Shown piece after piece: positions 18,001 to 49,977 of a stretch of DNA of 64,000 nucleotides (position 1 is the stretch's first letter; the number at the start of each line of letters is the position of its first letter). The DNA comes from Macrostomum lignano. Its lineage: Eukaryota. Below the pieces are notes generated by a model. The model saw only the letters and a list, made by a program, of their open reading frames with translations, did no database searches and was not told where the DNA came from. The position numbers and the translations under genes were made by a program. The stretch covers positions 186,001 to 250,000 of the forward strand of contig NIVC01000655.1 in assembly GCA_002269645.1 (NCBI GenBank), in the 5' to 3' direction.

Positions 18001-19801
18001 GAATTCTGAAATCCCATTTCTTAAATTCTGAAATCCCATTTCTTAATCTCTGAAATCCCATTTCTTGAAGTCTAAAATCCCATTTCTTAAATTCTGAAAT
18101 TCCATTCCCTAAATTCTGAAATCCCATTCCCTAAATTCTAAAATCCAATTTCTTAAATTCTGAAATTCCATTTCTTGAATTCTGAAATCCCATTTCTTAA
18201 ATTCTGAAATCCCATTTCTTAATTTTAAAATCCCATTTCTCAATCTGTAAAATCCTATTTCTTAAATTCTGAAGTCCCATTTCTTAAATTCTGAAATCCC
18301 ATTTCTTAAATTCTGAAATCCCATTTCTTAATTTTAAAATCCCATTTCTCAATTTGTAAAATCCCATTTCTTAAATTCTGAAATCCCATTTCTTAATTTT
18401 AAAATCCCATTTCTCAATTTGTAAAATCCCATTTCTTAAATTCTGAAATCCCATTTCTTAAATTCTAAAATCCCATTTCTTAAATTCTGAAATTCCATTT
18501 CTTGAATTCTGAAATTCCATTTCTTAAATTCTGAAGTCCCATTTCTTGAATTCTGAAATCCCATTTCTTAAATTCTGAAATCCCATTTCTTAAATTCTAA
18601 AATCCAATTTCTTAAATTTTGAAATTCCATTTCTTGAATTCTGAAATCCCATTTCTTAAATTCTGAAATCCCATTTCTTAATTCTAAAATCCCATTTCTC
18701 AATTTGTAAAATCCTATTTCTTAAATTCTGATATTCCATTTCTTGAATTCTGAAATCCCATTTCTTAAATTCTGAAATCCCATTTCTTAAATTCTGAAGT
18801 CCCATTTCTTGAATTCTGAAATCCCATTTCTTAAATTCTGAAATCCCATTCCCTAAATTCTAAAATCCCATTTCTTAAATTCTAAAATCCCATTTCTTAA
18901 ATTCTGAAATCCCATTTCTTAAATTCTAAAATCCCATTTCTTGAATTCTGAAATTCCATTTCTTAAATTCTGAAATCTCATTTCTTGAATTCTGAAATCC
19001 CATTTCTTAATTTGTAAAATCCTATTTCTTAAATTCTGAAATCCCATTTCTTGAATTCTGAAATCCCATTCCTTGAATCCTGAAATCCCATTTTCTAAAT
19101 AATTAACTTCTTTCCCAAATTCAGGACGGGTGCCGGCCCTAAACAATTGCAGCAGCGCACGCACCTTTCGCATGGCTAGAGCAGCAGCCGCCAAGCACAA
19201 ACATATTATTATTAGACGGGGCGAATTCGGCAGCATTGATAGCCGGCAGTTTCTCCGCAACACCATCGCCCTCAGCAACCGGGAATTGGCGGAGCAATCG
19301 CTTGGACTTTAATTGGTCTTCATCCTCGCCGATAAGATTTTTATCGTCGCCAATTTGCCAGACTCTCGCTGCGCCGTCCAGAGAAGCGGTCAACAGCAGA
19401 CAGTTGTCGGTGCTCCAGGCTAGACTAGCAATGGGTCCGACGTGTCCAGGCAGCTGACAGACCAGCTGACAGGCACCCGCGGACACCAGCGATACGGACA
19501 CGGAGCCATCCATCGAGCCGACTGCCAGCCTCTCCGAATCGTTGTTAGCAAACCGCAGCCTGGTAGCGCCTCTACAGGTAGCAGACGATTTCAAATTGCT
19601 GCCAACGTGCCGATCGATGACGCAAGCGAAGCCGGCAAAGGCGTACTGCTCGGCCGTGCTGGTGTTGCCGGCCAGTGCTCGGCTGGCTTCGGCCAGTCTA
19701 GTTGGCACCAGACCGGCGCCTGCGGCGTCCACTAGGCGCCGACGCGAAGCGCTAGACGCTGCGCCGCCCAACGGGGCGCCGTCGGCTAAATCGGCGTCCA
19801 T
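15067..19801 (-). CDS. WDR13: WD repeat-containing protein 13 homolog; 3 confident exons (443 aa from ATG 19801), N-terminus probably extends upstream
   Basis: Exons 19801-19165, 16947-16673, 15486-15067 with GT-AG junctions in frame (1332 nt). WDR13-diagnostic stretches: EASRALAGNT..YAFAG, RLRFANND, ARSWLSREARDP, FCPLMSFRQGAC, VNKLQGH, FNYDESLLAS..G.VIVWRR. Confidence 0.92.
15515..16300. repeat. 21/22-bp minisatellite in WDR13 intron 2 (GAATTGGGATTTGTGATCTCCT / GATTGGGATTAGTGATCCCTG)
   Basis: Period 22 measured at 15661/15683; alternates with a 21-bp variant. Confidence 0.95.
16420..16645. repeat. 22-bp minisatellite in WDR13 intron 2 (GAGGTCAGGCTTGGGGTCATTT)
   Basis: Period 22 at 16571/16593. 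Confidence 0.9.
17010..19100. repeat. 22-bp minisatellite filling WDR13 intron 1 (AAATTCTGAAATCCCATTTCTT, about 95 units)
   Basis: Period 22 at 17101/17123; contains higher-order duplicated blocks. Confidence 0.97.
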
Positions 19802-19989
19802 TGTTGGTCTATGGCCTATGGAGAGTTAGTGGATGATCAGTTATAGTCATTCAGATATAATTGAGGTGAGTCTTTAGGTCATTTAAGGTCGGAGCAAAGC
19901 TTAAGGGCCACCTGACGACTTGATGTTATTTGTTTTAGGGTGTTTGTGGCTAGGCTCTTGCACTCTAACAGTGCAGAATGAGGATTTGA

Positions 19990-21025
19990 GGATCTGTGAG
20001 GCTGGCTCAGCAACTGACACTCTGGGAGGCTGGCCCAGAAACTGAGGATCTGGGAGGCTGGCCCAGCAACTGAGGATCTGGGAGGCTGGCCCAGCAACTG
20101 AGGATCTGGGAGGCTGGCCCAGCAACTGAGGATCTGGGAGGCTGGCCCAGAAACTGAGGATCTGTGAGGCTGGCTCAGCAACTGACACTCTGGGAGGCTG
20201 GCCCAGAAATTGAGGATCTGGGAGGCTGGCCCAGAAACTGAGGATCTGGGAGGCTGGCCCAGCAACTGAGGATCTGAGAGGCTGGCCCTGCAACTGAGGA
20301 TCTGGGAGGCTGGCCCAGCAACTGAGGATCTGGGAGGCTGGCCCAGCAACTGAGGATTTGGGAGGCTGGCCCTGCAACTGAGGATCTGGGAGGCTGGCCC
20401 AGCAACTGAGGATCTGGGAGGCTGGCCCAGCAACTGCGGATCTGGGAGGCTGGCCCAGCAACTGAGGATCTGGGAGGCTGGCCCAGCAACTGACACTCTG
20501 GGAGGCTGGCCCAGCAACTGAGGATCTGGGAGGCTGGCCCAGAAACTGAGGATCTGGGAGGCTGGCTCAGCAACTGGGGATCTGGGAGGCTGGCCCAGAA
20601 ACTGAGGATCTGGGAGGCTGGCTCAGCAACTGGGGATCTGGGAGGCTGGCCCAGAAACTGAGGATCTGGGAGGCTGGCCCAGAAACTGAGGATCTGGGAG
20701 GCTGGCCCAGCAACTGAGGATCTGGGAGGCTGGCCCAGAAACTGAGGATCTGGGAGGCTGGCTCAGCAACTGAGGATCTGGGAGGCTGGCCCAGAAACTG
20801 AGGATCTGGGAGGCTGGCTCAGCAACTGGGGATCTGGGAGGCTGGCCCAGCAACTGAGGATCTGGTAGGCTGGCCCTGCAACAGAGGATCTGGGAGGCTT
20901 GCCCTGCAACAGAGGATCTGGGAGGCTTGCCTTGCAACAGAGGATCTGGGAGGCTTGCCCTGCAACTGAGGATCTGGGAGGCTTGCCCTGCAACTGACAC
21001 TCTGGGAGGCTTGCCCTGCAACTGA
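19990..21025. repeat. 28-bp minisatellite (CAACTGAGGATCTGGGAGGCTGGCCCAG), block 1
   Basis: Period 28 at 20041/20069; source of the many LGQPPRSS ORFs. Confidence 0.95.
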
Positions 21026-21814
21026 GGTAAGATAAAGGGTTATTTTTGGTTAGATTCGGTGTCATTTGATGACAGATTGTAGGGTTATTTGAGGTCAGGA
21101 TCGCGGTTATCTAAGGTTAGTTTTAAGGTATATGAGGTCACATTCGGGGTGATTTAGTTCTTGATTGGTTCAGTCTTAAGGCCTAAAGTCTCCTAAGCTA
21201 GGGTGAGGTTAAAGAAGTAGTTTGTAGTCAGCCTTAGCTGTCGTTTGAGTTCCGACTTCACGGGTCATTAGAGTTGAGGCATAAGGGTCATTTGAGCATA
21301 AGGAACATTTAAGGTCAAGCTTGGTATTACTTAAGTTACGGTTGGGGTCATTATAAGTTAAATTTGATGTCATCTGAGGTTTAGTCTAAAAAGCGATCAT
21401 TAAAACTTACAGACTGATCGATACTCGCTGACGATGACAACACGGTCACGGACGGAATAGCAAATTTCTGTTATATGACAGCTACACCAATAGAAAAGGG
21501 TGCTCGTGATTCAGGCTGTCAAGCAACCGCTGACGCCTTCGTCGCCATATTAGCCGGTGTGATCGGCTTGGCGCCTGGAACATCATTTGGCAGCGTTTAA
21601 TTAATAATAACGACGATACGCTAATCGCACTACCAGCAAGTAGAAAAAACTGACTTTTCGGCTATTGCTATTTTTAGCATATCTACTAAAAATTTGTTGA
21701 TCTAGTCATTTACTTCTCAAACTAAAGCGCTTTGAAATCATGAATGTAAAATGGCGGTAGTCTAATGACTTCTTTAGAGCAATTCTGAACGCACCAATTA
21801 GATCTGAGTGGCAA

Positions 21815-25871: not shown

Positions 25872-30664
<4,793 letters not shown>

Positions 30665-31935
30665 TTAAATGCCACTATTCTTTTCAAATAGAAGCAGCTA
30701 TGTGCTTACTGTGATAGTCAATTTCAAGTATTTTTCGATGCCTATAGCTCACCCTGTTCAGTTTGTACAATGGTATTGAGTCATCGATAAAGCTGTATTA
30801 GGCTATATTTGGCACAAGTTTCTACAGGTGCATGTTATGGGATTGCAACATTCATTGGACACAAGCTACTCGTATATAGCGCAGAATTTTATCTACTAAC
30901 ATTTAACTGTTGTACAAGTAAGCTAAGGACACATTGTGCTTTATCTAAAAATTGATATCCTTGCTATATTTGCTACCACAACTGATTGAATAGGAAAGCT
31001 AGATGATGAGAGCTAGCCTTTTATTTGCTTGTTAAATTGCTTTTATATAAAAAAGCATCTTTTGTGACACTTAGGCTTGGCTTTTGTCCCATGGAACTTT
31101 GCATTGTGCAATATGAGCAATGCCAGGCATATTGTAGTGTACAGAGCCAGGCTTTTAATGTTAGGCAGTAGCACAATAATAGTAATCAGTTGGCAGTGCA
31201 TCTACTAAATGTTTGTTCTACCTTTTTAATCCAGTGATTTTTCAGCTTAGTCAATTTAGATAATGATAGTTATTTTATTACAAATTTTGTTTCAAAAAGT
31301 TATAGCTAGTTGCTTTAGATATTATATATAGGCTTGCAAGACTGCTATAGCCTACTACTATATGTATAAAATAATTTTTGCTGTAAAACTTCCATTATAT
31401 GACAATGACAAATATATTGACATTCATTATTTTTTAGTGATATTAAATATATAAATATCTACTATTATTGTTTTTTCCTATATGTTAAAGGATTTTCTCC
31501 AAATATTATGATGGCAATAGCAATAACAATCCTAAAATTGTCAAGATTGTCATTTTGCTACCTAAACTTGTAAACAATTAACAAGCCTTTAAATTATGCT
31601 AAATTCTCTATATTGGCTATTATATATCTTGTCAGCCTAGAATTTTTTATGGTATCAACTTTGAACACTTGGCCATAACCACAGCCACCCTTTCTCTTAA
31701 GCTTGAGAAAAATTAAGACCTAAGAAAAAAAACTAAGACCTTTCTTAAATATAACTCAATTCTTAGTTGTATAAGTATAATTTACAATTATAAAAAAATT
31801 AACTTGCCTGGCATGCTATGCAATTGGTTAAGGCTTTTGTTTTCTATTCTAGTATAGGCTTATAAACAGCATGATTTATGATTTGCAATGAGATATCATT
31901 GATTCATTCAACTAAGGCTATCTTTTTTATTAGAG

Positions 31936-32388
31936 GCAGGGGGTCGTGTGCAACCTGGCGCACTTTAAGCGACATAGGCACACAACCAGCAAGAGGCATT
32001 ACTGCCTATTCCGCCAACTCCCTTGAGCAGGCATACAAGTATGCGGATATGTATGCAGGCACATACTTATATCGGAGTATATAGTGGCCCTAACTTTATA
32101 TTATTGTTAGGCATGTACACTTCAATGTGCCTTGGGGGGTTAGCCCTAACCCCCCAATGTGCCTTGGGGGGTTAGCAGGGGGTCGTGTGCAACCTGGCAC
32201 ACTTTAAGCGACATAGGCACACAACCAGCAAGAGGCATTACTGCCTATTCCGCCAACTCCCTTGAGCAGGCATACAAGTACGCGGATATGTATGCAGGCA
32301 CATACTTATATCGGAGTATATAGTGGCCCTAACTTTATATTATTGTTAGGCATGTACACTTCAATGTGCCTTGGGGGGTTAGCCCTAA
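31936..32388. repeat. Direct tandem duplication (period 239 bp) of a CpG-containing insert, with a perfect hairpin GGGGGGTTAG-CC-CTAACCCCCC
   Basis: Copies 31936-32149 and 32175-32388 differ at two positions. Confidence 0.92.
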
Positions 32389-32629
32389 AGGCCGTTAAAC
32401 ATGCTTTATATGTATATTCTAACCTTGGCTAACTGGTGGATTGCATAGACAATTGCTATATTCATAGATTTTACTTAACTGTGCATTGGCTTTGCCCATA
32501 TACTAAGCAGCCTATCACTGCTATGTTTTTGACTATAGTGCCAAAGCATATATGGCTGATACTAAAAAATGGTCTGCCTGTGTGTGTCCTAAGTCTTTGG
32601 TGCTTGCTAAGTATCTATTGGATACTTGC

Positions 32630-32935
32630 TTTTGGGGGATTGCTTGCTTTCTGGGGGATTGCTTGCTGTCTGAGGGGTTGCTTGCAATCTAGGGGATGCT
32701 TGTTGTCTAGGAGATTGCTTACTATTTGAGAGATGCTTGCTGTCTAAGGGAATGTTTACTATCTAAGGAATGCTTGCTGTCTGGGGGATTGTTTGCTATC
32801 TGAAGGATGCTTGCTGTCTAAGGGAATCATTGATTGCTATCTAAAGAATACTTGCTATCTGAGGAATGCTTGCTGTATAGGTGGAGGATTGCTTGCTGTC
32901 TAGGGGATGCTTGCTGTCTGGGGGATTGCTTGCTA
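32630..32935. repeat. Degenerate ~20-bp tandem repeat (GGGGATTGCTTGCTGTCT)
   Basis: Recurring TGCTTGCT(G/A)TCT motif; similar material at 38930-39230. Confidence 0.75.
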
Positions 32936-33019
32936 CATTATATTTTTATTAAAATTATTAAATTCTTTCTTTGCTCCCTAACAGGGGGCTTAAATTGCTA
33001 GTCATCAGATATCAGATAT

Positions 33020-33560
33020 AGGCCTACTAAAAATAAAAATCTTGCTTGCTTATGCGTAGTCAATTATTTTCTGAATGGCTCAACCAATTTTCTCTATTTT
33101 TTTCACCAAAAGATATTAAATGTGTCTAGGACAGTAGGCCTATATGTAATTTTTTAAGCTCTAGCTTATTGCTAAAGCAAAAGGAAAGGATTAAATAGTC
33201 AAAAAACTGATTTAAATGGGCTTTTTCAATGCAAATTTTATTAGGCCCTAGCTTGCACACAGTGAAAGACTTCATAGCCAATTTTAATGATTGCATCAAC
33301 AGATTCAATATCAAATGATAACAAAACTCACTCTGCCCCATTGCCTGCCAAGATAATTACTCTATTTAACTTGTGTAACCAATAAAGAGGGGATATAGGC
33401 CTAATAAAAATTTTTGATGCTAGTAGATAGCCTACCCCAGCTAGTAGGCCTACTAAAAGTAAAGATAATGAAATCATTTCTAAAAAGGAAAAAGTATATC
33501 TAAAAGATATTATTACCTAAAAGACCCAACCAAATGTTGACTTGACCTAGGCTATACTAT
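33020..33560 (-). mobile_element. Old, CpG-decayed copy of the dispersed element at 45358-46290
   Basis: Reverse complement of about 33077-33415 aligns colinearly with about 45915-46214. Confidence 0.8.
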
Positions 33561-33718
33561 ATACTAATTTGCTTACCCAATATTATCCTAGGCCTATACC
33601 TATAGCCTATGTAGGCCTATACAGAACAGATGTCGATGACAAAAAACATGATATTGCAAACAAACTGATCACATGAATTTTGATGAACAGAACAAAATGA
33701 AATGCACATGCAAAAAAA

Positions 33719-34240
33719 TTGGCTATCCTGCAGAATTGTTTGTTAAACTCACTGTTACGCACATTTTTTTAGCTATTGACATGAAACTTTCTAAAAATGA
33801 ATATTTGGCAATGTTGCAATTTGTTTTGCATAATTATTTTTACTTTTGAATATGCACCAACGTGTCACGGAAGCCGGATTTCTGCCAAGGTTGTACCTGT
33901 TGCCGAGCTGCTGAATCTGATGGATGGCATATTCCCTTTGCACTACATATATGATGGTACATGCATGTACCCTACCAATGTCTTTGGTGCAGTGTATTGG
34001 ATTGCCCATTACTAATATCCCCTGTGAGGATTTGAGTTCTGAGACTTGTTTTGAGCGACTTTTGAGGATTCAGTGACTAAGGAGCGATGTTGGCGCGTAT
34101 TCAAAAGTAAAAATAATTACGAGAAACAAACTGCAACATTGCCGAATATTTCATGTCAATTCTTTCATGTCAATAATACTACAATAGCTACAAACAAAAA
34201 TGTGCATACAGTGCAGCCAAAAATTCTGCAGGATAGCCAA
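33719..34240. mobile_element. Foldback/MITE-like element with ~140-bp imperfect inverted arms
   Basis: Arms 33719-33861 and 34089-34240 (e.g. TTGGCTATCCTGCAGAATT / AATTCTGCAGGATAGCCAA). No TSD identified. Confidence 0.7.
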
Positions 34241-34279
34241 AAATCAACAATGACAAATATTAGTTGTGACTTGTGTTGA

Positions 34280-34530
34280 CGCTGCCGCCGTCATCTTGTC
34301 TTGAGTAGGCCCTAGTCAGGCTTAGGCCACTTTAAGTCGTAAAATTTGAATTTATAAATTCTACGAAATTCTCATGCTTTAAGTGTTTAAGGCTCCAAAG
34401 TCAGGCATAGACTCCAAATTTGCCAGTACGTGTCAACACGCAGCTTAGTTGAAACTAAAAACAATGAATTATAAACGGACCAATAAATCAATAAACGCGC
34501 GCGCCGGCGGGATCCATCTATGCTAGCAAG
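34280..34530. promoter_or_regulatory. Candidate CpG-retaining bidirectional promoter region between U2AF65 (-) and HRD1 (+)
   Basis: CpG-rich patch (AAACGCGCGCGCCGGCGGG) at the point where gene orientation switches, flanked by CpG-free DNA. The function is inferred. Confidence 0.45.
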
Positions 34531-34888
34531 GCTAGTGCTGGAGTCCAGAAGTTAAAATAAAAATTTAAACACGGTTCGCCTTTCTATAAACAATTAAACA
34601 AACACTGTACACATATTTTTACTTTGATAATCTCGTGAACCTACCGGCTAATGTTTTAGATACAAAAATACTTTTAATTTCTATTAGCGGAATATGTTAT
34701 TATTTCATGTTTTTTTAATACAGGTTTGGCACAGGGTGATTTTTGTCGAAATTTAAACTGCAACGTAGAAATTTTTTTTTGAATCCACGTCATTTATTTA
34801 CAATTTGCTATTAGTCAAATTTTAGTGTTTGACCAACAAGTTTTTCCTGTGACTTAGCAAAGTCTTTAAGAAACCAATAAATGCAATT

Positions 34889-37800
34889 ATGCGCACCTTT
34901 GCGCTGTCATCCTTAAGCTTTGCTTTGACAATTCTTGTCTTTGGAAATGCTTTCTTTCAGAAAAAGCAGTTTTATCCATCCATTGTCTACTTAACAAAGT
35001 CAAACTCAAGTACAGCCGTAAGTGATCGCATATGATATATTGTATATTGAAAATATAAATTATTTTATAAGGAGCAAATATTACCATTCCTATAGACTAT
35101 ATGCTATGTTGATGAAAATGTTTGCAAAAATATCTTCTAGTTATTAATTTTTTTTCTTTCTTTTGGAATAAAATTAGGCCTATATTCATTATTTAAATAG
35201 GTTTTAGAGTATGCTGTAATTTATCATTTTTTTAGATAGGCCTGAATACCATGGTCAGGAAGGTGCAGCATGTGCGCCAGAATAACATCCATCAAAATTT
35301 TTGTTGTGCGCCACGTGCGCCGAGAAAAAAAAATTACTTGTGCGCCATGCGCAAAGAAAAATATACTTGAAAAAGCACCATCAAGTATTAAGTATCTAAA
35401 TTGAATCAATACCAATGGAAGTTCAAGCAGTTCAATCATGGCTTCTATTTGCAAAATATAAGCAAAAAGGTGCAACAAAAGCTGCAAAAGGCACAAATTT
35501 GTTAAAATTTGCAATCATTAAAAGCTACGATTAATGAAATTTTAAATAGAAACAACATTGGAAAAAATGACTATCGTATCGACTATCGCTTATTTTATTG
35601 ATTGATTGACATTTAATATACATTTTTTTTATTATTCATTATTATATTGTCACATACACTGATGTATAGTGTTCCGCCGCCGCGAGTTTTGACCTCCGTA
35701 ACCGTAACCGTAGCCGTAAGAAAGAAGCAACTTCCGTAGCCGAATTTTGCCGTCATTACGGGCTAAAAAAGTCCGTAACCGTAATTTGCCATAACCGTAG
35801 CCATAATGTATAACAAAAATTGATATTTTTGCATGAAAAGTAGGGCAGACAGAAAAGGACAGATAAAAAGGATAAAAGGATAGCAATAAAACCTACTTGT
35901 TGTTCGTTCATGCATTAATATTCATTTATTTTTTCGTAAATATAATATCTTTATCGAAGTATTCTATAGCATTGTTGTATGCAATTGTGTGCTTGGTGCC
36001 TTTTTCAGTTTTCTGTGTCGTGATTCTGTTTTGTTTCGCTACAATATGAATATATGACTGACGTGCCAAGGTCAATGTGTATGTTTAATATCATTAAATA
36101 AATATATGAATTTGTTCAAATAAAACTGCTTCAAAATTTCCGATGACTAAGAAATTGCATGTTACATTTTTTCATTTTCATTTTATTGTATTGTCTATTG
36201 TATTGTCTTTTTTGGTTTCAATCAATTTTCAATCATAATTCATATTCTTATCCTATTAGTATTTATTTAGTATTTCCTTATTAATATTCTTTCATCCTTA
36301 TCCTCATAATCTAAATCTAATATCCTATTTTTATGCTAAGGAGCTAAATGCTACATATGGCTAAGAAATAAGAATGCCAGATTCTTAGTCTCTTGTAGGC
36401 TTTGACTGGCTCTCTCTGTCTCGCTGCTATCATGCTATCGCTATGCTATGCTATGTCGTATGCCTAATGAGAAAATTTGTGAAAAAATTCGTTTTTCATT
36501 TTCAAGAAGTTTCGTAGATATTTAGAAACTTAACAAATGTAAAAAATAATAATAACTAGTAAAACAAAATGAAAACTGGTTGAAGTTGATATAAAAAAAT
36601 TCTTTTATAACACTAAACAGTTAAAAATAAATAATTTTTGTTACGGCTACCAATTACGGCAAGTCTAGAAAAATCTCCGTAATCTGTAACCGTAACCGTA
36701 AGCTCAAAATATGTCCGTAACCGTAATCCGTAATGAAAATACGGCTTCAAAAGTGTCGTAGCCGTAATTTGCTGTAGCCGTGGCTGTAATTACGGCGGAA
36801 CACTACTGATGTACCTTGTGTGCTATGCGCCGAGCCATGCACCAATGCACCAAGCCATGCGCACGCGGCGCAGTGAAGTGTGCGCCGTGCACCAGCAAAT
36901 TGCTGATTTGTGCCGGAAAATTCTGAGGATTCTACTGTCTTCCTGGCTTTGGCCTGAATAAAGCCTATGCAATACTTCCTAGGCCCCAGCATAGGGCCTA
37001 TACATATTTGATGATTGTGACCCTTTGATAATTGATGTGGTTAATAATGGTCCAATTTGGTGATAGCCATTTTGGTAACAACCAATTTGCCAACAAGTGA
37101 TTATAAACAATATTTATTGATTAATATGCTCTAATTTAGAGTCTAAAATACTTTAAAGACTAAAGACTCTAAAGTCTAAAAGACTCTAAAAGAGTCTAGA
37201 ATAATGTGCAAATGAACTTGAAGGAAAGAAAAATAAAAAATAATTGTTCTTGCACACTTTGAAAGATTTGAATTAATGCATAAAACTATTTGTTTAAAAG
37301 TATTTAAGCCAATCTTTCCCTCTTTTTAGGGCACTAAATGCATGCACCAAAAATATTGTATAATTGACCAAATATTGTATATATTAGAATCTCTAAGTTA
37401 GTGAATTTAAATTACAAAATTTACTTTCTTTTTTGTTAATTATACTTACAAAATTTTAATGTTTAAAATACATTTTGTTTAATTTTCTTTGCCTTCAATC
37501 TTATTTAGAAAGTTAATACACAAGTATTAACAAATTATAATATAGTTCAACTAGAAATTAAACTATATATGACAAAATATTTAAGATGGTAAATAGTAGA
37601 TTAATTATCGATAAAGTTAACTACCATAAAGATATCACACTTGATCATGTAGAATATGCCTAAAAATTCAAGTGTGCAATAACCTTGCATACCTAAATTT
37701 AAGTATATACAGTTGGCATGCACAACTGTTAAGTAATAGTATATGCGCATACCTGGTATACACTTTATAGAATCATATAGAATATTTAGTGTTAAGTAAA

Positions 37801-40800
37801 AAAAAGATTCCTGAAAAAAAATAATTTTAAAGAAAAAAAAAGAAAAAAAATTGAGGAAAAAATTTCAATTTTTCTAGCTGTTAAGCTAGTTATTAATGCA
37901 TTAAAATAGAAGTTTGTGTGTACTGATTTTATATTGCAAATAGTATAAAAAAGTAAGAAAAATAATTGACTAATTATTAGCAAAAAAGGTCTTTTACACA
38001 ATGTCAAAAAAGTCATTTACTGTTGCAATGCAAACAATGTTATTTATTGTTGCAATATTAGCCTAGATTTGAGAAAATGGGTGCATACTAAATTTTTTTG
38101 GTGTGCATTTGTAATTCTTCCATTTTTGTTCAGGTATGCACCTAGCACAATCTGGACCTAGCATGAGATATTGTGTTGGCAGTTATGAATTTGCTTTGTT
38201 ACCCTAGTGGCAATTATCAAAGTGGTTATTTTTTGTTACCAAAGTGGCTATTACAGAAATGGGTTATATTCATATGGCCCATGTATCTTGGTCTTAGAGA
38301 ATGACCCCTTAGCACATTTTTGCTAGACCCTTAATGCATGTCTACAAATTTTTAAATCATCCCAACAGGGCATCATATTAGGCTTTTTATTTATCACATA
38401 TATATTGGCTTTATTTTGACTTTGACTTTATATATTTGTATTATAATATTAAAACCATTAAAAGTACTATAATTCATTTTTAATTTGACAAAAGCTAGCC
38501 TGAATATAAGCATACTAGGTTTGAATTGTAATATTTTAATTTTGTAATTTAAAGTAAAAAAAATAATTGCATTAGCTTAAAAATGATTATTTCATTGGCT
38601 AAGACAAGTATTATTGTACTTATTAAAAAGATATGATTGTACACTAGCTAAAAAAGACTTTTGCACTATGTCAGAAAAGAATTTGTGAAAGATAAGAAAA
38701 AGGTTATTGCACTATATAAGATAATGACTTTATTGTATTAGATAAGAAATATTGCAGTACATAGAGAAAGGACTTTTGCTCTAGATGAAAATGAATATTT
38801 CATTATCTAAGATATAGATTATTGCATTGGCTAAAGAAAGGATTATTGCACTACATAAGAAAAATATTACTGCACTTAATAAGTAAAAGATTATTGTACT
38901 AGCTAAGGAAAGTGTTACACTAACTTGTTATTTAGGAGGGGTCATTTACTATTTGGGAGAGAGGAGATTCTTTTTATCTAGGGATGTTTACTATATCTTG
39001 GGAGTGCTTGCTATTAGGAGGGGGATACTTGTTATCTGGCAAGTGCTTGCTGATATTTGAAAGATACTTATTATCTAGGGAAGGCAGTTCCTATCTGGAG
39101 GTATTGCAAGCTATCTAGGGTTGCTTACTTTTAGGGGATATTTGCTCAGGAGAATTGCTGAGATTTCAAGGCTTGCTAGGGGGATTGTTTTGGGGAACAA
39201 TCAAGGATTGGGGGGAAGTGTCAAGGCAAATAGAATTCATATAAATAATTTTTGTCCCTTATTGAGTGCCTGAAAGAGGGCACTATAGATTGCTAGTCTA
39301 TCTATTATTTTTATTCCTATTTTTGTTTAGATAAATGTGTATGGTTAGCACTTAAAAGTTTTGAATATATATAATACACTAGATCATATTGAGTGCACAT
39401 TAGAATATACGATAGGTATATTATATTGGTCAACACACTATAATCTATTTTTTCTTAAAATTGATAACATATTGACAGACAGACATATCAACAAACCATT
39501 TTAGTATATGGATAGATATGGCCTTTAGGCTAGAAATTTATATGGATATATATTTGCCTCTCATTGAAAATTTTGTTATACAAAAATGGTTTGGGTTTGA
39601 TATATAAGTATTTAGTGTAGAACTTGTAAATTTTCATCAAATAAAACTCTAGTAATTTATTTCTAATATGCAGGCATTGGCATCTTGTATGATGATATTT
39701 GAGCCTATTTTGAAGATTTGTCTAGTTAAAGTTTTATTTGTCTACTTGTTGTCTTAGTAGTCTAAACTGAATTTCTTACTTTTGCATTATTTAATAATTT
39801 CAAGGTTTTAGACCCCATCCTAAATTTTTGGCCATGCCATTGCCACTGCTAATAGAGTAAGTCCAACTATCAAAATGAAAAATGCCTAAAAATACTTTGA
39901 TCTATCAATACTTCCTAAATATCTTACTGCAGTTAAAGATGATAGAATTGCAATAGAAATCTAAGAAAGCTAATAAGATTTAGAAATACAGTTCTAAGGA
40001 ATCTTATTATTTTCTGATAAGATGTTGTATAGTACACAAAAATATTGACTGCTCTCATAGGAAAATAATAAGTGCATAAATTTAATTCACTAAATATTGT
40101 AGGTTCTCTATCTGCAAGGCATCGTACTAATTTACCTATTGGGCAAAGCCATAGCTCGCATATTCTTTGGCCAGCTTCGTCCAACCGAAGTTGAGCACCT
40201 AATCGAGCGGGGCTGGTACGCTATCACTGAGACCTGCTTAGCTTTCGCAGCATTTCGCGACGACTTGTCATTCCGTTTCTTCACCATGTTCACTTTGCTG
40301 CTATTCATTAAATGCTTTCACTGGCTAGCAGAGGATCGAGTCGATTTTATGGAGCGCAGTCCGGTTATTACTCGAGTGTTTCACCTGCGAGCTATGGGTG
40401 TACTCACCTGCCTGTGCCTGCTCGATGCCGCTTTTATTCGATACGCCTATCGAACCACATTGGCTAGAGGAGCCAGCGTACAATTAGTATTCGGTTTTGA
40501 ATACGCCATATTGTTTGTGTTCGCTTTGGGCGTCTGGCAAAAGTACATATTGCACGCGATAGATTCGCGCTCCGACGAACCATGGGATCGTAAAGCTATT
40601 CTAATGCTTTGGGGCGAGCTGGTCTTGTCTGCCGCAAGCCTGCTATTGTACGCCATGTTCATCTTCATCATGCTACGAGTGCACGCTTTTCCATTGTTCG
40701 CTATTCGACCAGCTTATACGGCATTTAGAAGCTTCAAGCTGGCACTAAGCGACATGGTGCTGTCGCGCCGGGCCATCCGAATCATGCAGCAACGCTATCC

Positions 40801-40987
40801 AGACGCTACAGCCGAGGATTTATCTAGCTCCGATAATGTCTGCATCATCTGTCGCGAAGAGATGCTGCCTGATACTGGCTGTAAAAAATTGCCATGCGGC
40901 CATATTTTCCATTCTAATTGCTTGCGATCTTGGTTCCAGCGCCAGCAGACTTGTCCAACTTGTCGGATGGATGTACTTAGAGACAAT

Positions 40988-41019
<32 letters not shown>

Positions 41020-44000
41020 ACAGCCACCTGCAGCGGCTGCTGCTGCTGCTGCTGCTCCTTCGGCTCCATCGTCAGCTTCGGCTGATTCCCAAGCCGCTGC
41101 CGCCGCTGCATCCGGTAGCGCCGCAGCTTCCTCGTCGCCTCCAGCCGCATTTTTCCTACCTTCCGCCGATTTCTCGGCATCGATTCCTGCTGCCCCGGCT
41201 CCGCTGCTGACGGACGATTTGAAGCAACTCAGCGAGGCTGAACTTCGCCGAATGGAGGCTTGGAATCGCGAAGCTCTCGAGCGTCGAGTTGAGCACCTGC
41301 AGAGAATCTCGGCTCTGCTAGACGCCGCCGTACTGCAGATGGGCCAGTACACCCAGCTAATGGCGCGGATTGGGCCGCCTCCACCGCTTGCTGAGGACAG
41401 TCAAGCAGGCGCATCTGCAGCCGCCGCTTCTGCTCCTGCTGCTGGATCAGCTGCTGAGGCCACCGCTAATAGTACTAGCAGTAAGTAGTATAGTGCATGT
41501 ATCGTAATTTTTACACAACTGTTTCTTATGCGCGTGTAAATCATTTTTCAGTCTGTCGTTCTAAAAATCTGATCTTTTTAATCGTTCTTAAGCGTCAAGC
41601 AATGTTAGATTAGGGATAGAACTAGCCAATTCCAACCCCCGTTGGGGCTTTCCGTCAGAACTCCTACCAAAGTTTTCCCACGCAAAAGAAATTCACCCAA
41701 CTGAACCCCCATCCAAAGAATCCCTCATCCATAAAATCCTTGATGCAAATAATCTCACATGCAAAAAATCCCTCATCCAAAGAATCCCCATACAAAGAAC
41801 CCCCCATTGACAGAATCCCCGATCCAAAGAATTCTCCATTCAAGGAATCCTCTATCTGTAGAATTCCCTATTTAATGAATCGCCCATCCGTAGAATCTCA
41901 CATGCAAAGAATACCCATCCTTCCCGTCCCATCCCCATCCCATCCCATCGATAGAATCCCCGATCCGAAGAATTCCCCATTTAAGGAATCCTCCTATCTG
42001 AAGAATACCCCGTCCAATGAATCCTTTATTCAAGAAATCCCCATCCACAGAAACCCTCTATCCAAAGAATCGCCCATCCATCCCTATCTAAAGAACCCCC
42101 CATCCATCCCTATCCCAAGAATCCTCCTATTCATCCCTATCCAAGGAATTTCCCTATCCATTCCTATTTAAATAATCCCCTTAACCATCCATATAAAAAA
42201 AATCCTCCTCTAAAAAGTCCCCCTTCGAAGAATACACATCAGAATAATTCACATCCTTAAATAATCCCCCATCAAAAAAATAATTGGCCAATGAATCCCA
42301 GAATCCCTTCATCTAAAGAACCCCCGTTCAAATAACCCCCATCTAAAGAATCTTTCATCTAAAGAATCCCCCATTCAAAAAACCCTCCATCGAAACAATG
42401 CCCCACCGAAGAAATTCCCCAATGAATCAATGAATCCAAAGATATCCATTAGAAACATCCCTCATCCAAAGAATCATCAATCCATAGAATTCCCCCAAGA
42501 CTTAAACATCTCAGCAATTCCCCAAAGCCTCGACACCTCAGAAATTTTCCCCAAGCATTGACATCTAAGCAATTCCGGCGCAAGCCTTGACATGTTACCA
42601 ATTTCTCCTCGTCCAAAGCCTTGAAATCTCAGAAATTCCCCCAAGTCTTGACATCTCAGAAATTCCCCCAAGCCTTGACATCTCAGAAATTCACCTAAGC
42701 CTTGACATCTGAATAATTCTCCTTCCCAAGTCTTGAAATCTCAGGAACTCCCTCTTAAGCCTTGGTATCTCAGCAATTCCCCAATAAGATTTGACATCTC
42801 AGCAATTTATCCCTAAGCCTTGACATCTCAGCAAGTCCCTCTTAAGCCTTCATTAATTCCCCAAGGTAGGATTTTATACATGTATCTCAATAATTCCCCC
42901 CCTGTAAATCTTAACATCTTAGAATTCTCTTCCGAGCAAGCATCCCCTGATAGAAAGTACCCCCAGCAAGATTAGTGAAGCAGTTTCCTCAGCTAGCCAA
43001 TTCCAACCCTCGTTGGGGCTTTCCGTCAAAACTCTAACCACAGTTTTCCCACGCAATAAAATTTCACCCAACTGAATCTCCCATACAAAGAACCCCCCCC
43101 CCCCATCCAAAGAATACACCACCCATAGAATCCACGATACAAAGAATCCCCCATCCAAAAAACCTCCCATCGATAGAATCACCGATCCGAAGAATTCCCC
43201 ATTCAAGGAATTCTCCTATCTGAAGAATTTCCCATCCAATGCATTGCCCATCCATAAAATCTCACATGCAAAGAATACCCTTCCAAAGAATCCCTATTTA
43301 AAAAATCCCTCATTCACAGAATCCCCATCGAAAGAATCCCCCACCCATCCATATCCAAAGAAACCCCCATCCATTCATATCCAAGGAATCCCCCATCCAT
43401 CCATATCCAAAGAATCCCCCATCCATCCATATCCAAAGAATCCCCCATCCATCCATATCCAAAGAATCCCCCATCCATTCATATCCAAAGAATCCCCCAT
43501 CCATCCATATCCAAAGAATCCCCCATCCATTCATATCCAAGGAATCCCCCATCCATCCATATCCAAAGAATCCCCCATCCATTCATATCCAAGGAATCCC
43601 CCATCCATCCATATCCAAAGAATCCCCCATCCATTCATATCCAAGGAATCCCCCATCCATCCATATCCAAAGAATCCCCCATCCATTCATATCCAAGGAA
43701 TCCCCCATCCATCCATATCCAAAGAATCCCCCATCCATTCATATCCAAGGAATCCCCCATCCATTCATATCCAAGGAATCCCCCATCCATTCATATCCAA
43801 GGAACCCCCCATCCATTCATATCCAAGGAACCCCCCATCCATTCATATCCAAAGAAACTCCCCATCCATTCATATCCAAAGAAACTCCCCATCCATTCAC
43901 ATCCAAAGAATCCCCAATCCATGCATATCCAAAGAAATCCCTATCCATCCATATCCAAAGAAACCCCCATTTATCCCTATCCAAAGAATCCTCCTATCCA

Positions 44001-47000
44001 TCCCTATCCATTCCTATCTAAAAAATCCCCCTCCAAAGAATCTCCATGAAAATAATCTACGTCCAAATAATCCCCATCCACAGAATCTCCATCCACATTG
44101 TCCATTGATTCTCCCATCAAAAGAATAATTGGCCAAAGAATACCCTTATCTAAAAAACTCCGTTCAAAAAATCCACGTCTAAATAATCCCCATCAACAGA
44201 ATCCCCCATTCAAAGAATCCAAAGAATCTCCCATCCAAATAATCCGCCCATGAATCCCCTCATCTCCTCAAGATATCCATTAGAAGCATCTCTCGTTCAA
44301 AGATTCCCCAATCCATAGAATTCCCCCCCCAAGACTTAACATCTCAGCAATTCCCATCAAGCCTTGACACCTCAGAACTTCCCTCCAAGCCTTGACATCT
44401 CAGAAATTCCCTCTTAAGCCTTGGCATCTCAGTAATTCCCCCAGTAAGCCTTTATATCTCAGTAATTCCCCCAGTAAGTCTTGACATGTAAGCAATTTCT
44501 CCTCGTGCAAAGCCTTGACATCTCAGCAATTCCCTTCACGCCTTGATATCTCAGGAATTCCCTCTTAGCCTTGGCATCTCAGTTTAATAAAAAATTTTGA
44601 ATACACTACATGAATACTCGTAGCTTCTCTTCTACTGATTTACCTGACGTTTTTTTTAGTTTTCTTTTGCTTAAAAGTAAAAATTAAATTGCTAAAAAGT
44701 TGAAAATTAAATTCTTTTAATAAAAAACTTCTACAATCTAAAAATTCGAACCCACGTCGCTGCATTAGCAGGTCAGTCTGTTTACCTCTAGGCTATCTCT
44801 CATCGTTTTGAAAACATAAATTGATAACATAAATCGTCGCACTTATAAAATTCAACACTTTCAAAACTCCACGCACAGAGTAAATCACGTGAAGCAGTTA
44901 TGACAATTTCTCAGGCAGTCTGTATCAGTTTCAATTAAAGTCACCAATATAGTTACACAATCTAAATCTAAATTCAATGGGGCTGGCTGGAATTGTGGAG
45001 TTTGCGATATTGGAGAGCGTACAATCAGTAAATAAAGTAAAGTTCATTGGAATCTTCTTTTTAATGATGTGCTTTTAATTTTTCGAATCTAAGCAAAAAA
45101 TTATATTCCCGAACTCAGCGTTTCAAGTTCTTTCTTGCAATACAAGGCTCTCTTCTGAAAGTGAAAAACTCGAAGCACAAACAACGATTGAACATTCCTG
45201 CTATAAAGCATTCAAATTCATAAGGTGTACATTCAGCGCCAGCTACAGTGAGAGGCCTGCAAGTTGATGCATTGAAATTAACAACCAAGCCAGCCCATGA
45301 ATAATTGAATAGCGACACCCGCCCCTCAATTAAAATGTGTTGCGCAACCTTTCAACGCTTGTAGCTCTCCACGCGAGTGTGGAGAACCAATGCTATAGTT
45401 GGCACTGAGTTATGATGCAATACAATTCCATCGGCAGTCAGACTGCTTCTCAATCGGAAAGAACTGTTTGAACTTTAAAAAACAGGGAGAAAATCGAGTT
45501 TTTCGAATATTTAAGCCCGAAAAAATGAAGCAATTTCTTAGCAAAATTTTGTGTACCAGCGCACCATCAATACGCATCGAATGCAGAAAACCCCACGATA
45601 TTCCGACTATGTAGAGTCAAGTTAAGCAAAGGTTCCTATAGGTACATAGTTTTGATTTTTAGTATATTGGAAGCATCCAGAATTTTTATTATACCCCCCC
45701 CCCCTTAATTGGTTACGCAAGTTAAATAAATCGAGTTTTTCGAATATTTAAGCCCGAAAAAATGAAGCAATTTCTTAGCAAAATTTTGTGTACCAGCGCA
45801 CCATCAATACGCATCGAATGCAGAAAACCCCACGATATTCCGACTATGTAGAGTCAAGTTAAGCAAAGGTTCCTATAGGTACATAGTTTTGATTTTTAGT
45901 ATATTGGAAGCATCCAGAATTTTTATTATACCCCCCCCCCTTAATTGGTTACGCAAGTTAAATAGAGTAATTATCTGGGCAGTGGGGCAAAGTGAATTTT
46001 CTTATCAGTTGGCTCTGGCGCAATCATTAAAATTGGCTGTGAAGTTTCTCGCTGCGCGCAGGCTGATAAAAAAATACACTAAAAAGGCCATTTAAAACAG
46101 TTTTTCGAATATTTAATCCCCTTAGCATTGAGCTAGAGCTTAATAAAATTACATGTACCGTCCCGGGCACATTTGACATCTTTTGGCGAAGAAACGGAGA
46201 AAATCGGTTGAGCCTTTTGGGAGATAACCTGTTACATACCCACAGACAGACAGGGCCGGTGGAGGGGGGGTTGCTACTTTAGATATATTATTAGATTAGA
46301 TTAGAAGATTAGAAGATTAGAAGATTAGAAGATTAGAAGATTAGAAGATAGAAGATTAGAAGATTAGAAGATTAGAAGATTAGATTAGATTAGATTAGAT
46401 TAGATTAGATTGCTGGGATGCCAATGCTCAAGGGGAGTTGCTGGGATCCCCAGGCCAATGTGGAGTTTTTAATGCCAAGGCTCAAAGGCCGTGCTGATAT
46501 CTTAGGCTAGAATAGCTGGGTTTCAGGGCTGATGCTTAAGTTTTTTTCTTAGGGAAACTGATATAAGTGACGGTAAAATGCTATGTACATTATGCATAGG
46601 GCAAATAATGCTAGTCCTTCTTTTAAATTAAGTTGACTTTGAGTTCTTAGACTCTGGGGGGTTCACAAGCTCAAAATTTCACGTCGAAAGCACCTTCCTT
46701 CGCAAACTCGAAACTTCACAAGGTCGAAAGTTCACGTCAACAACTCCTTAGTCCATCGCAAGGGATGTCATATTACATATGGCAAACATGGGGGGGGGGC
46801 TTCATTAGACCAAAATTTCACAACGCCGAAGACTACTGCATAATCCTTGTTATATTAAGTTTTCTACGATGTGAAATTTCGTTCTTATAAAGTTTTGAGC
46901 TTGTGAAAGCGCCCCGGTCACTTGCCATTGATCTATCCATAATCCTCATTTAAGTTCAAACTGACACGATTCTCAAACCGACAACTTATCCAATTTACTA

Positions 47001-47246
47001 ACAACAGGCTCCACGAAACCGGCTGTAAAGTCTGAGAATTGGTCACCCGAGCCAGCCGCTAGCCAGCCAGCGTCAACCGCGAAGCCGGAGTCGCCGTCAG
47101 TTGTCGACGACAAGCCAGACCTAACTGGCTCAGGGTCGGCTTCCTCCGCCACCGCGCCCGACCAGTCGGAGATTAGGCGGCGTCGGCTGCTTCATTTGTC
47201 GTCTCGCGACGGATTGAAAGCTGAGGATGAGGATTCGCTTGATTGA
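34889..47246 (+). CDS. SYVN1: E3 ubiquitin ligase HRD1/synoviolin, 3 exons, about 581 aa
   Basis: Exons 34889-35017 (MRTF...KQFYPSIVYLTKSNSSTA, GTAAGT donor), 40103-41480 (VLYLQG..FFGQLR..TETCLAF..KCFHWLAEDRVDFMERSP; RING-H2 CIICREEM..LPCGHIFH..CLRSWF..CPTCR; GTAAGT donor), 47008-47246 (EIRRRRL). 1746 nt, in frame. Confidence 0.95.
35249..36952. mobile_element. Older non-autonomous DNA transposon with 8-bp TSD (host of a nested insertion)
   Basis: CCTGAATA at 35241-35248 and 36953-36960; imperfect 14-bp TIR CCATGGTCAGGAAG vs CCAAAGCCAGGAAG; repeated GTGCGCC subterminal motifs. Confidence 0.65.
35667..36805. mobile_element. Young non-autonomous hAT-like element, 1139 bp
   Basis: Perfect 13-bp TIR TAGTGTTCCGCCG/CGGCGGAACACTA; 8-bp TSD CTGATGTA (35659-35666, 36806-36813); dense CCGTAA/TTACGG subterminal repeats; no transposase ORF. 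Confidence 0.9.
38560..39230. repeat. Highly degenerate tandem repeats (TTATTGCACTA-type, then GGGGAT(A/G)CTTGCT-type) in HRD1 intron 1
   Basis: Recurring motifs visible; the 39140-39175 part matches the reverse complement of the CCTTGACATCTCAGCAATTCCC array. Confidence 0.6.
40988..41060 (+). repeat. Coding CAG/CAA (Q12) and GCT (poly-Ala) triplet repeats in HRD1 after the RING domain
   Basis: QQQQQQQQQQQQPPAAAAAAAAA in the ORF. Confidence 0.9.
41622..44585. repeat. Tandem duplication of a ~1.37-kb composite unit in HRD1 intron 2, with internal 26-bp (CCAAAGAATCCCCCATCCATCCATAT) and ~27-bp (AAGCCTTGACATCTCAGCAATTCCCC) arrays
   Basis: CTAGCCAATTCCAACC at 41622 and 42993 followed by colinear sequence; the 26-bp array is expanded in copy 2 (43330-43960). 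Confidence 0.88.
44735..44800 (-). other. Degenerate tRNA-like head (tRNA pseudogene or SINE 5' fragment)
   Basis: Minus strand GATAGCCTAGAGGTAAACAGACTGACCTGCTAATGCAGCGACGTGGGTTCGAAT: A-box-like TAGCCTAGAGG, B-box-like GGTTCGAAT, possible GCT anticodon loop; no acceptor stem. Confidence 0.5.
45358..46290 (+). mobile_element. Non-autonomous dispersed element, possibly rolling-circle (Helentron/DINE-1-like), with an internal 237-bp tandem duplication
   Basis: 5' hairpin TCTCCAC-GCGAGT-GTGGAGA (45366-45385); 3' AAAATCGGTTGAGCC...ACAGACAGACAG...TTTTAGATATATTA end typical of such elements; duplication 45491-45964; second copy at 33020-33560. The family assignment is by resemblance only. Confidence 0.6.
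46290..46390. repeat. (TTAGAAGA)n/(TTAGA)n microsatellite
   Basis: Directly visible. Confidence 0.95.
46656..46915. mobile_element. Small MITE-like remnant
   Basis: Inverted TTCACAAGCTCAAAA / TTTTGAGCTTGTGAA near GGGG/CCCC ends; no clear TSD. Confidence 0.5.
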
Positions 47247-49029: not shown

Positions 49030-49977
49030 ATGTCTCTATCTGGAAAGGTCTGTCTAGTCACAGGCGCCACTCGCGGTATCGGCAAAGGCATCGCCCTGCA
49101 GCTGGGCGAGGCCGGTGCCACGGTGTACATCACTGGCCGAACGATGGACCCGAAGCCAGGTGCTGCAGTTGGCGGTAGCATCAAAGAAACCATTGCAGAG
49201 ATCGAAGCCAGAGGCGGTCGAGCTATTGGTGTTCAATGCGATCACAAGAAGGACGAGGATGTTAAGCGGTTGTTTGAGCAGATTCAGCAAGAGCAAAATG
49301 GTCGTCTGGACTTGCTGGTTAACAATGCTTATTCGGCTGTGTCTTACATTTTTGAATCGATAGGCAAGAAGTTCTGGGAGCTGGACGTGTCAGCTTGGGA
49401 CGAGGTGAACAATGTAGGCTTGCGCAATCACTACATCTGCTCTGTGTACGCCTCTCGCATGATGGTAGAGCGGGGCACGGGTCTTATTGTTAACATCTCC
49501 TCAGCTGGCGGATTGCGCTACCTGTTCAACGTCCCCTACGGTGTAGGAAAGGCGGCTGTAGATCGTCTGGCAGGCGACATGGCCGTTGAGTTGAAGTCCC
49601 GAGGCGTGGCCGCCGTCAGTCTGTGGCCCGGCGCCGTTCAAACCGAAGAGATCATGTCTAATCTGTCAAATATGCCGCCGCAGCAGCGTCGAGTGTTTGA
49701 GCAAGGCGAGACTGTTGAGTTTGCTGGAAAAGCCATTGTTGCATTGGCTTCTACACCTGTGAGCAGCTTGTTAAAGGACAAGACTGGCCGAGTGCTGCTG
49801 ACTGGCGACCTTGCCGACGAGTACTGCCTGCGCGACGCTGGCAATCGTCAGGTGCTCAGCATGCGCTCGCTAAAATTCATGCTATCCCACGCGGGCTATT
49901 CGTGGCTGGCCGGTTTTGTACCAACCTTTGTGAAAGTGCCGCGGTTCTGTCTGGCTCTGTTTGGAAGCCGGTTCTAG
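49030..49977 (+). CDS. DHRS1: DHRS1-like short-chain dehydrogenase/reductase, copy 1 (intronless, 315 aa)
   Basis: TGATRGIGKG, GRLDLLVNNAY, WDEVNNVGLRNHY, YGVGK (YxxxK), SLWPGAVQTE. Confidence 0.92.
   Translation: MSLSGKVCLVTGATRGIGKGIALQLGEAGATVYITGRTMDPKPGAAVGGSIKETIAEIEARGGRAIGVQCDHKKDEDVKRLFEQIQQEQNGRLDLLVNNAYSAVSYIFESIGKKFWELDVSAWDEVNNVGLRNHYICSVYASRMMVERGTGLIVNISSAGGLRYLFNVPYGVGKAAVDRLAGDMAVELKSRGVAAVSLWPGAVQTEEIMSNLSNMPPQQRRVFEQGETVEFAGKAIVALASTPVSSLLKDKTGRVLLTGDLADEYCLRDAGNRQVLSMRSLKFMLSHAGYSWLAGFVPTFVKVPRFCLALFGSRF

Follow-up and report, generated by a model that had tools for sequence, protein, structure and literature searches.

Tc1/mariner transposons leave a canonical excision footprint in which the target TA is gained together with a few fixed terminal bases, that of Sleeping Beauty being TAC(A/T)GTA. 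The described families mostly start with CAG or YAGG, and none with GG termini is known to us among Tc1/mariner elements. The TA target-site duplication of these elements is established background (PMC4344528). A cluster of short palindromes, TAGGCCTA, in the nuclear DNA of Macrostomum lignano, a flatworm with a free-living habit, resembles the footprints of Tc1, Tc3, Mos1 and Sleeping Beauty in that TA is duplicated on both sides with a few terminal nucleotides trapped between, and in that one dominant product is accompanied by variants one nucleotide shorter or longer, for a net insertion of 5-7 bp. Unlike in those footprints, the trapped bases are a G-run and a C-run, implying GG...CC termini. 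The cluster also departs from the usual Tc1/mariner reports in its far greater density, with about a dozen fixed scars in ~1.3 kb of wild-type DNA and neither donor nor transposase seen in 124 kb. The octamers are real, and most likely they exemplify a mutation of known type, at an unusual density.

Termini of the Tourist/mPing type often begin with GG, as GGCC or GGGC. PIF/Harbinger-ISL2EU-Spy (PHIS) elements and Tourist-like MITEs are comparable to the cluster in their GG-type ends and gene-proximal preference, and an element with GGGC/GGCC ends in one of the comparator copies of this locus is superficially similar to them. In PIF/Harbinger elements the first base of the inverted repeats is usually A or G, those of Pangu start with AG or GG, and the PHIS target duplication is TWA, AT, ANT, CWG or TNA, or none at all (PMC4482050). 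In the octamers, in contrast, TA is duplicated and the outer flanks are not T...A, the bases outside the octamers being A..C, G..T, A..A, G..C, C..T and so on. PIF/Harbinger, ISL2EU, Pangu and Nuwa were therefore rejected as the source, as their target duplication is the wrong one (PMC4482050). MITE insertion was rejected as well, since the insert amounts to merely 3-5 bp plus the duplicated TA and lacks a body of tens to hundreds of base pairs.

Two further systems invite comparison. Polymerase theta and template-switch (quasi-palindrome) insertions are like the octamers in that a short, palindromic insert matches nearby sequence, with TA microhomology at both junctions and a local distribution. 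What sets the octamers apart is that one insert, with unchanging boundaries, recurs at about a dozen sites, most of which have only TA in common with potential templates. P elements at Drosophila heat-shock promoters resemble the cluster in their many independent hits within a few hundred base pairs of a promoter, the difference being that here only scars remain. The genes flanking the cluster are probably active in the germline.

The window (the whole stretch of 64,000 nucleotides analysed here) was recognized as M. lignano nuclear DNA because its SYVN1/HRD1 ubiquitin ligase ORF (40139-41488, the longest near the cluster) is 98-99% identical to two M. lignano proteins. The cluster lies 0.6-1.9 kb upstream of SYVN1, in the promoter region between two divergent genes:

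30628, minus strand: start codon of the U2AF2-like gene
30628 to 34889, no strand assigned: 4.2-kb intergenic region of the divergent U2AF2-like and SYVN1/HRD1 genes
34889, plus strand: start codon of SYVN1/HRD1
34889 to 35020, plus strand: SYVN1 exon 1
40103 to 41482, plus strand: SYVN1 exon 2
47001 to 47243, plus strand: SYVN1 exon 3

What the motif sites have in common is their position, in the divergent promoter region and the first intron of SYVN1. Eight copies of TAGGCCTA are found in the window (33019, 33135, 33396, 33445, 33589, 33612, 35175 and 15186), six of them inside 600 bp. A first-pass annotation of this DNA had listed the first seven, all of which are present where it placed them, 15186 being additional. 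Variants are found as well: TAGGCCCTA at 33242 and 34306, TAGGGCCTA at 36992, TAGGCTA at 33548 and TAGCCTA at 33428 and 33603. All match the pattern TA-G(1-3)C(1-3)-TA, and in the insert spectrum GGCC is dominant, followed by GGC, GCC, GGCCC and GGGCC. Dinucleotide shuffles give an expectation of 0.89 octamers, with 0 of 100 shuffles reaching 8, and an order-3 Markov model gives 0.88; chance and base composition were ruled out as the cause of the octamers by this excess of 8 over ~0.9. Among the 25 GGCC tetramers of the window that are flanked by A/T pairs, 8 are TA-GGCC-TA (~1.6 would be expected with even flanks), and no other G/C tetramer shows this bias towards TA flanks. The enrichment is extremely local, being confined to one region of 2-6 kb; elsewhere, over ~95 kb in which further intergenic regions are included, there is just one octamer. 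A literature search for the octamer returned primers and unrelated binding sites only and gave no link to a known process.

Two further versions of the locus, L001 and L002, were taken from the Mlig_3_7 assembly. L002 is 97-99% identical to the window over 29.2-57.2 kb, and L001 is the more diverged copy, at 82-94%. M. lignano carries three subgenome copies with a ~2% SNP difference (PMC10733133), and the window and L002 fit two of these three. An exact look-up of the window's DHRS1 ORF found no record, and the members of the L001 DHRS1 protein cluster led only to the two comparator contigs again. An outgroup for part of the cluster is provided by two copies of one repeat:

33077 to 33421, minus strand: copy A, an old, CpG-decayed non-LTR/SINE-like repeat fragment that received several of the insertions
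45909 to 46214, plus strand: copy B, a younger member of that repeat, serving as outgroup

Copy A is 75% identical to the reverse complement of 45909-46214, so the sister copy at 45.9-46.2 kb named in the first-pass annotation is real. Copy B is the 3' part of a 4.8-kb insertion in SYVN1 intron 2 (window 41622-46395) that resembles a recent non-LTR/SINE-like insertion. L001 and L002 lack it, showing a clean empty site, GGGATAGAA/TTGCTGGG. It consists largely of 16-, 26- and 28-bp minisatellites and two 237-bp units, and its tail is (TTAGA)n/(AGATTAGA)n. Its absence from both comparators, together with the (TTAGA)n-type tail, marks copy B as a younger member of a retroelement-like family, of which copy A is an old, decayed member.

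The polarity of the differences was read from three-way alignments and indel censuses of the window, L001 and L002, with copy B as additional outgroup. The motif sites are as follows (no strand assigned to any):

33019 to 33026: TAGGCCTA, 6-bp insertion at TA; in the window and L002; L001 lacks it and reads CAGATA-TACTAAAA
33135 to 33142: TAGGCCTA, 6-bp insertion at TA; in the window and L002 (mutated there to TAGGCCTG); L001 and copy B lack it
33242 to 33250: TAGGCCCTA, 7-bp variant TA+GGCCC+TA; in the window and L002
33396 to 33403: TAGGCCTA, older event; in all three locus copies (L001: TTGGCCTA); copy B lacks it (GGGTA-TAATAAAA)
33428 to 33434: TAGCCTA variant; L001 has GAGCCAC there
33445 to 33452: TAGGCCTA, common to the three locus copies; no outgroup alignment at the site
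33548 to 33554: TAGGCTA, 5-bp insertion TA+GGC+TA, window only; L002 reads GACC-TA-TACTATA; L001 lacks it
33589 to 33596: TAGGCCTA, common to the three locus copies
33603 to 33609: TAGCCTA variant; L001 has TAGCCAA
33612 to 33619: TAGGCCTA; L002 has TAGGCCTGCCTA (+4 bp) and L001 ATGGCTATGTATACAG; altered in every lineage
34306 to 34314: TAGGCCCTA (TA+GGCCC+TA); shared by the window and L002; plain GAG-TA-GTCAGG in L001
35175 to 35182: TAGGCCTA in SYVN1 intron 1; common to the three locus copies
36992 to 37000: TAGGGCCTA variant in SYVN1 intron 1; L001 has TAGGGCTTA
15186 to 15193: TAGGCCTA, isolated outside the cluster, at a position with no comparator coverage; a single copy compatible with chance

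These sites fall into tiers of different age. The oldest, found in all three locus copies, comprises 33396 (missing from copy B), 33445, 33589, 35175 and 36992. The intermediate tier comprises 33019, 33135 (also missing from copy B), 33242 and 34306, which the window and L002 share and L001 lacks, and L001:7427, which is present in L001 alone where the window and L002 have plain AAAGA-TA-ATG. In the youngest tier the window and L002 themselves differ (33548, L002:9417 and 33612). At L002:9417 an extra GGCCTA was inserted at the second TA of a pre-existing TAGGCCCTA, that of window site 34306. Since their recent split, the window and L002 have thus each acquired new events within ~800 bp, and neither has retained an element.

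In the clean cases the empty allele has one TA and the filled allele two, with a short G-run and then a C-run between them. CAGATA-TA-CTAAAA, for example, became CAGATA-TAGGCCTA-CTAAAA, and the same is seen at GGATAG-TA-TATGTA and, in L001, at AAAGA-TA-ATGAAA. A single TA when empty and a double TA when scarred are found at 33019, 33135, 33548, 34306, L001:7427 and L002:9417, and a clean 6-bp insertion of TAGGCC/GGCCTA at a single TA is found at 33019 and 33135 and, independently, at L001:7427 and L002:9417. The insert is missing from two independent outgroups at 33135 and from at least one at 33019, 33242, 33396, 33548, 34306 and L001:7427. The differences thus polarise as recurrent insertions of a fixed sequence at TA in three locus copies, each made up of a TA duplication and a fixed G-run/C-run insert. 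This bears out the first-pass annotation, which had read the differences as insertions: they are gains and not losses, L001 and/or copy B being without the insert and other locus copies having independent gains. The converse that it had considered, in which the family consensus contains the motif and the 46-kb copy lost it, is not what the three-way and copy-B comparisons show. All three indels that it had described against the sister copy are seen in the alignment; the third (33242) is no clean TA insertion relative to the ancestor. At 33242, L001 and copy B read TATCAG against TAT-TAGGCCC-TAG in the window, which requires a C>T change as well as an insertion, and the TA there seems, from this alignment, to have arisen by the C>T change.

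Between the window and L001, 3 of 9 indels of 6 bp are exactly TAGGCC; of the other six, three are tandem duplications of adjacent sequence (GACAAT, ATGCAC, AACTTC) and three are unrelated inserts. Between the locus copies in 32.8-33.8 kb, the motif type makes up 6 of the 10 indels of at least 4 bp. Replication slippage was rejected as the cause, TAGGCC being no copy of its neighbours at 33019, 33135 and L001:7427; slippage fits solely a GCCT duplication in L002.

The first-pass annotation had further coupled the insertions to a CpG-erased, methylated state, and this part is not supported. CpG decay is real in copy A, where 11 of the 11 aligned copy-B CpGs are TG, CA or TA and where a strong bias makes C>T or G>A changes account for 50 of 96 substitutions. 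At 37-40 kb CpG o/e is close to 0, against ~1 in the neighbouring gene bodies, which suggests a mosaic of CpG decay. The motif does not track this mosaic: octamers are missing from the CpG-poor stretches at 31-33 kb and 37-40 kb, and CpG o/e is ~1 around the sites 34306 and 35175. On these positions, coupling to CpG depletion was rejected as a general rule. An indirect link is possible, in that C>T decay makes new TA targets. M. lignano has DNMT1 and DNMT3 and low levels of 5mC (PMC11292947).

The reading that we favour, at about even odds, is that the octamers are scars left by the excision of a cut-and-paste transposon that duplicates TA and has GG...CC termini. Such an element would insert at TA and duplicate it, as Tc1/mariner/pogo-type elements do, and its termini would read 5'-GG(G/C)...(G/C)CC-3'. 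Excision by staggered cuts would leave 2-3 terminal nucleotides on each flank, and end joining would then yield TA-GG/CC-TA; a GGC/GCC pair with a 2-nt overlap (central GC) would give the same product. Rarer joins would produce TA-GGC-TA, TA-GCC-TA or TA-GGCCC-TA, and a full 3-nt overlap with a central mismatch would produce TAG(G/C)CTA, in parallel to the TAC(A/T)GTA of Sleeping Beauty. The promoter-proximal interval between the U2AF2-like gene and SYVN1 would have been visited repeatedly, either as an accessible hotspot or through local hopping of a resident non-autonomous copy, and the repeated visits would have left scars at three time depths. We infer the transposon origin, its termini and the reason for the frequent hits in this region.

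Several features of the scars bear on this reading. Their anatomy, a net gain of TA and a short G-run/C-run at a single pre-existing TA, supports a footprint of the Tc1/mariner type, and the variants, all of them TA-G(1-3)C(1-3)-TA, match variable processing of GG(G/C).../...(G/C)CC ends. Against it stand the tight confinement of the enrichment, the lack of a convincing donor in the 124 kb scanned and the likeness of the flanks of 33019 to those of 33396 and 33445. Since events are found in both the window and L002 and the element in neither, footprints presuppose a strong hotspot, or else hopping within the region and subsequent loss of the element. A strong insertion hotspot at a divergent promoter is plausible. 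Of the fixed-sequence micro-insertion process proposed in the first-pass annotation, the recurrent de novo insertion at TA stands, its footprint option is also the reading that we favour at about even odds, its option of a templated repair patch is the less probable rival, and the coupling to the methylated state is not supported.

The bases between the TAs predict GG(G/C)...(G/C)CC ends, and the sole candidate is a 1,490-bp inverted-repeat element inside the cluster of L001 (L001:7478-8968), which the window and L002 lack. Its empty site in the window is:

33505 to 33516, no strand assigned: ATATTATTACC, empty site of the 1,490-bp element of L001

The element has the inverted termini GGGCTATTCCATATAA / GGCCCATTCCATATAA (GGGC...GGCC), arrays of a TATTCCRT motif and a nested MULE-like MITE. 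Its flanks are TAT/TAT, that is, a 3-bp target-site duplication or an extra T at the left end. BLAST of the element against the window and L002 found no second copy, and a metagenome scan with its inverted repeat gave at least 120 single matches on unrelated contigs, which were taken as chance. It sits at an unscarred site, and no element occupies any scarred TA in the three locus copies. A scan of all 124 kb (window, L001 and L002) for TA-GG...CC-TA inverted-repeat pairs as donors gave only chance-level or palindrome-driven pairs. The search for GGCC-ended TA elements that had been suggested in the first-pass annotation thus yielded, in 124 kb, this one GGGC...GGCC element with its TAT/TAT flanks and no convincing TA-GG...CC-TA pair.

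L001 also carries a 975-bp mariner-like remnant (L001:15629-16603) with ~200-bp inverted ends that start with CGAGGGGTGTCCAAAAAGTA; it is flanked by TA and includes a fragment of an HTH-type ORF (85 aa), for which a word search found no database homologue. A copy of this kind with TA flanks indicates that TA-duplicating transposons live in this genome. As the donor of the octamers it was rejected, since its ends, CGAGG...CCTCG, would leave scars of the CG type. Three of the seven TAGGCCTA copies in L001 (7936, 11110 and 13671) lie inside L001-specific transposon insertions, the hosts being the element of 1.49 kb and another of 2.67 kb that shows the 8-bp duplication CATATTTG. In these cases the motif was either brought with the elements from elsewhere or gained after their insertion in the region. 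In SYVN1 intron 1 of L001 there is in addition a recurrent island, TATATAGGCCATAT / ATATGGCCCATGTA (L001:14130-14143, 14400-14413 and 14528-14542), which presents GGCC in a TA...AT context and is possibly the same scar after decay or in another form.

The main rival, which we regard as possible and well short of probable, is templated micro-insertion. Once a first TAGGCCTA is in place, breaks or stalled forks at TA sites close by would be repaired, in polymerase theta end joining or by template switching, by a polymerase that primes on TA, takes GGCC-TA from an adjacent copy and re-anneals on TA. Stated more broadly, TAGGCCTA would be a self-propagating micro-palindrome that converts nearby TA sites through templated repair, template switching or an unknown TA-specific activity, with no full-length mobile element involved, and in this form too the reading is a doubtful one. 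Templated copying would account for the tight clustering, for new events in the same place in every lineage and for the missing donor; identical donor motifs lie within 20-430 bp, TA is present at both junctions, and the L002:9417 and L002 GCCT events occurred beside or within an existing motif. Of the TA[AC]TAAAA sites, 4 of 4 in the cluster carry the motif as against 0 of 26 elsewhere in the window. A flank test compared six polarised insertion sites with random TA sites of the same region for similarity to the flanks of older copies. Site 33019 scored high on both measures: GATA-...-xTAAAAAT is common to it and 33396 (13 of 20 positions, p ~0.005), and it has a CTAAAA run in common with 33445 (6 nt, p ~0.01). 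Site 33242 scored on the contiguous-run measure only, where its left flank matches, over a run of 6, the right flank of 33396 in reverse complement (p ~0.01).

The other four of the six events (33135, 34306, 33548 and L001:7427) show no flank similarity to a potential template beyond chance, which argues against homology-driven copying as the general cause, and the Fisher combined p over all six is ~0.10. Templated inserts, moreover, normally vary in length and boundaries, whereas every insert in this set is G(1-3)C(1-3)+TA. Copying from a neighbour also leaves the origin of the first copy without explanation and gives no account of the three octamers inside the L001-specific transposon insertions. 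The fixed insert and boundaries, mostly without flank homology, appear to fit transposon ends, a reading at even balance, better than templating, which is held only tentatively. Templated copying may account for some of the events, and a mixed history is possible, in which the first copies were footprints and some later copies the product of templated repair.

It is improbable that a dedicated, novel micro-insertion activity, such as a transposase-like or domesticated enzyme without a full-length element, places a fixed GGCC (or AGGCCT) into T^A. The fixed insert sequence, the strict TA target, the failure to find a donor element in 124 kb and the absence of any tie between the octamer and a known process in the literature search would all agree with such an activity, but the variants GGC, GCC and GGCCC resemble untidy end joining and not a defined unit, the window encodes no candidate enzyme, and we know of no precedent.

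It is very improbable that the comparators lost an ancestral motif, or that the octamers stem from base composition, from chance or from selection favouring a palindrome as promoter motif: the cluster is promoter-proximal, where gain of a motif could be selected, and the isolated copy at 15186 is compatible with chance, but the outgroups lack the insert at the polarised sites, gains occurred in each lineage (the ancestral reading is already contradicted by the three-way alignments), 8 octamers were observed against 0.9 expected, and selection would not yield always the same 5-7-bp insertion with TA duplication instead of substitution.

If the octamers are footprints, a TA-targeting cut-and-paste transposon would have gone on excising in the germline of M. 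lignano up to a very recent time, because events differ between locus copies that are 97-99% identical. An active endogenous element of this kind would be a candidate tool for transgenesis in an animal where transposon-mediated transgenesis has failed; in M. lignano, integration of Minos was not transposase-mediated (PMC5730564). Transposon scars could then make up a major part of the small indels that a promoter region carries, as the 6 of 10 indels of at least 4 bp would indicate, and TA-G(n)C(n)-TA would be a simple signature with which to map past transposon traffic and its hotspots across the three subgenomes. If, on the other hand, the insertions were templated, repair would have spread a short palindrome locally, which would be unusual, and a micro-palindrome that propagates itself would be a tiny sequence spreading in a promoter region by hijacking break repair. 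What is unusual here is the density of the scars and the inferred termini, the mechanism being most likely of a known kind.

Other mobile elements and repeats distinguish the locus copies. L002 carries a 1.86-kb insertion (L002:10430-12292) that the window lacks, with CCATAGTTCGGAA as inverted repeat and with a target duplication, GCCACGTG(C), of 8-9 bp, which makes it hAT- or Mutator-like; it is polymorphic between locus copies of 97-99% identity. In L001, a 917-bp inverted-repeat element (L001:26257-27173, CCTATTGGAATAAGT...) with the 10-bp target duplication GGCGCCCGAC interrupts the coding sequence of a WH1-domain gene, which is split between two gene models as a result; the WH1-domain ORF is uninterrupted in the window (55235-57658) and in L002. 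Very large minisatellite arrays fill introns and intergenic DNA of the window (17016-19100, 26430-27629, 19987-21027 and others), with units of 22, 28 and 34 bp in 95, 37 and 36 copies; the 22-bp array at 17-19 kb has zero CpG and zero GpC.

Two intronless 7TM/GPCR-like ORFs are found at 5147-6091 and 11550-12503 (minus strand). Their first ~125 residues are near-identical and differ only at residues 2-6, and a search of 5.8 billion proteins with the ORF at 11550-12503 found no homologue at E<=1e-10. Three DHRS1-like short-chain dehydrogenase genes stand in tandem in the window (49030-49977, 50621-51849 and 52309-53325), and the corresponding interval of L001 holds a single full copy, indicating that the copy number of these genes varies among the locus copies.
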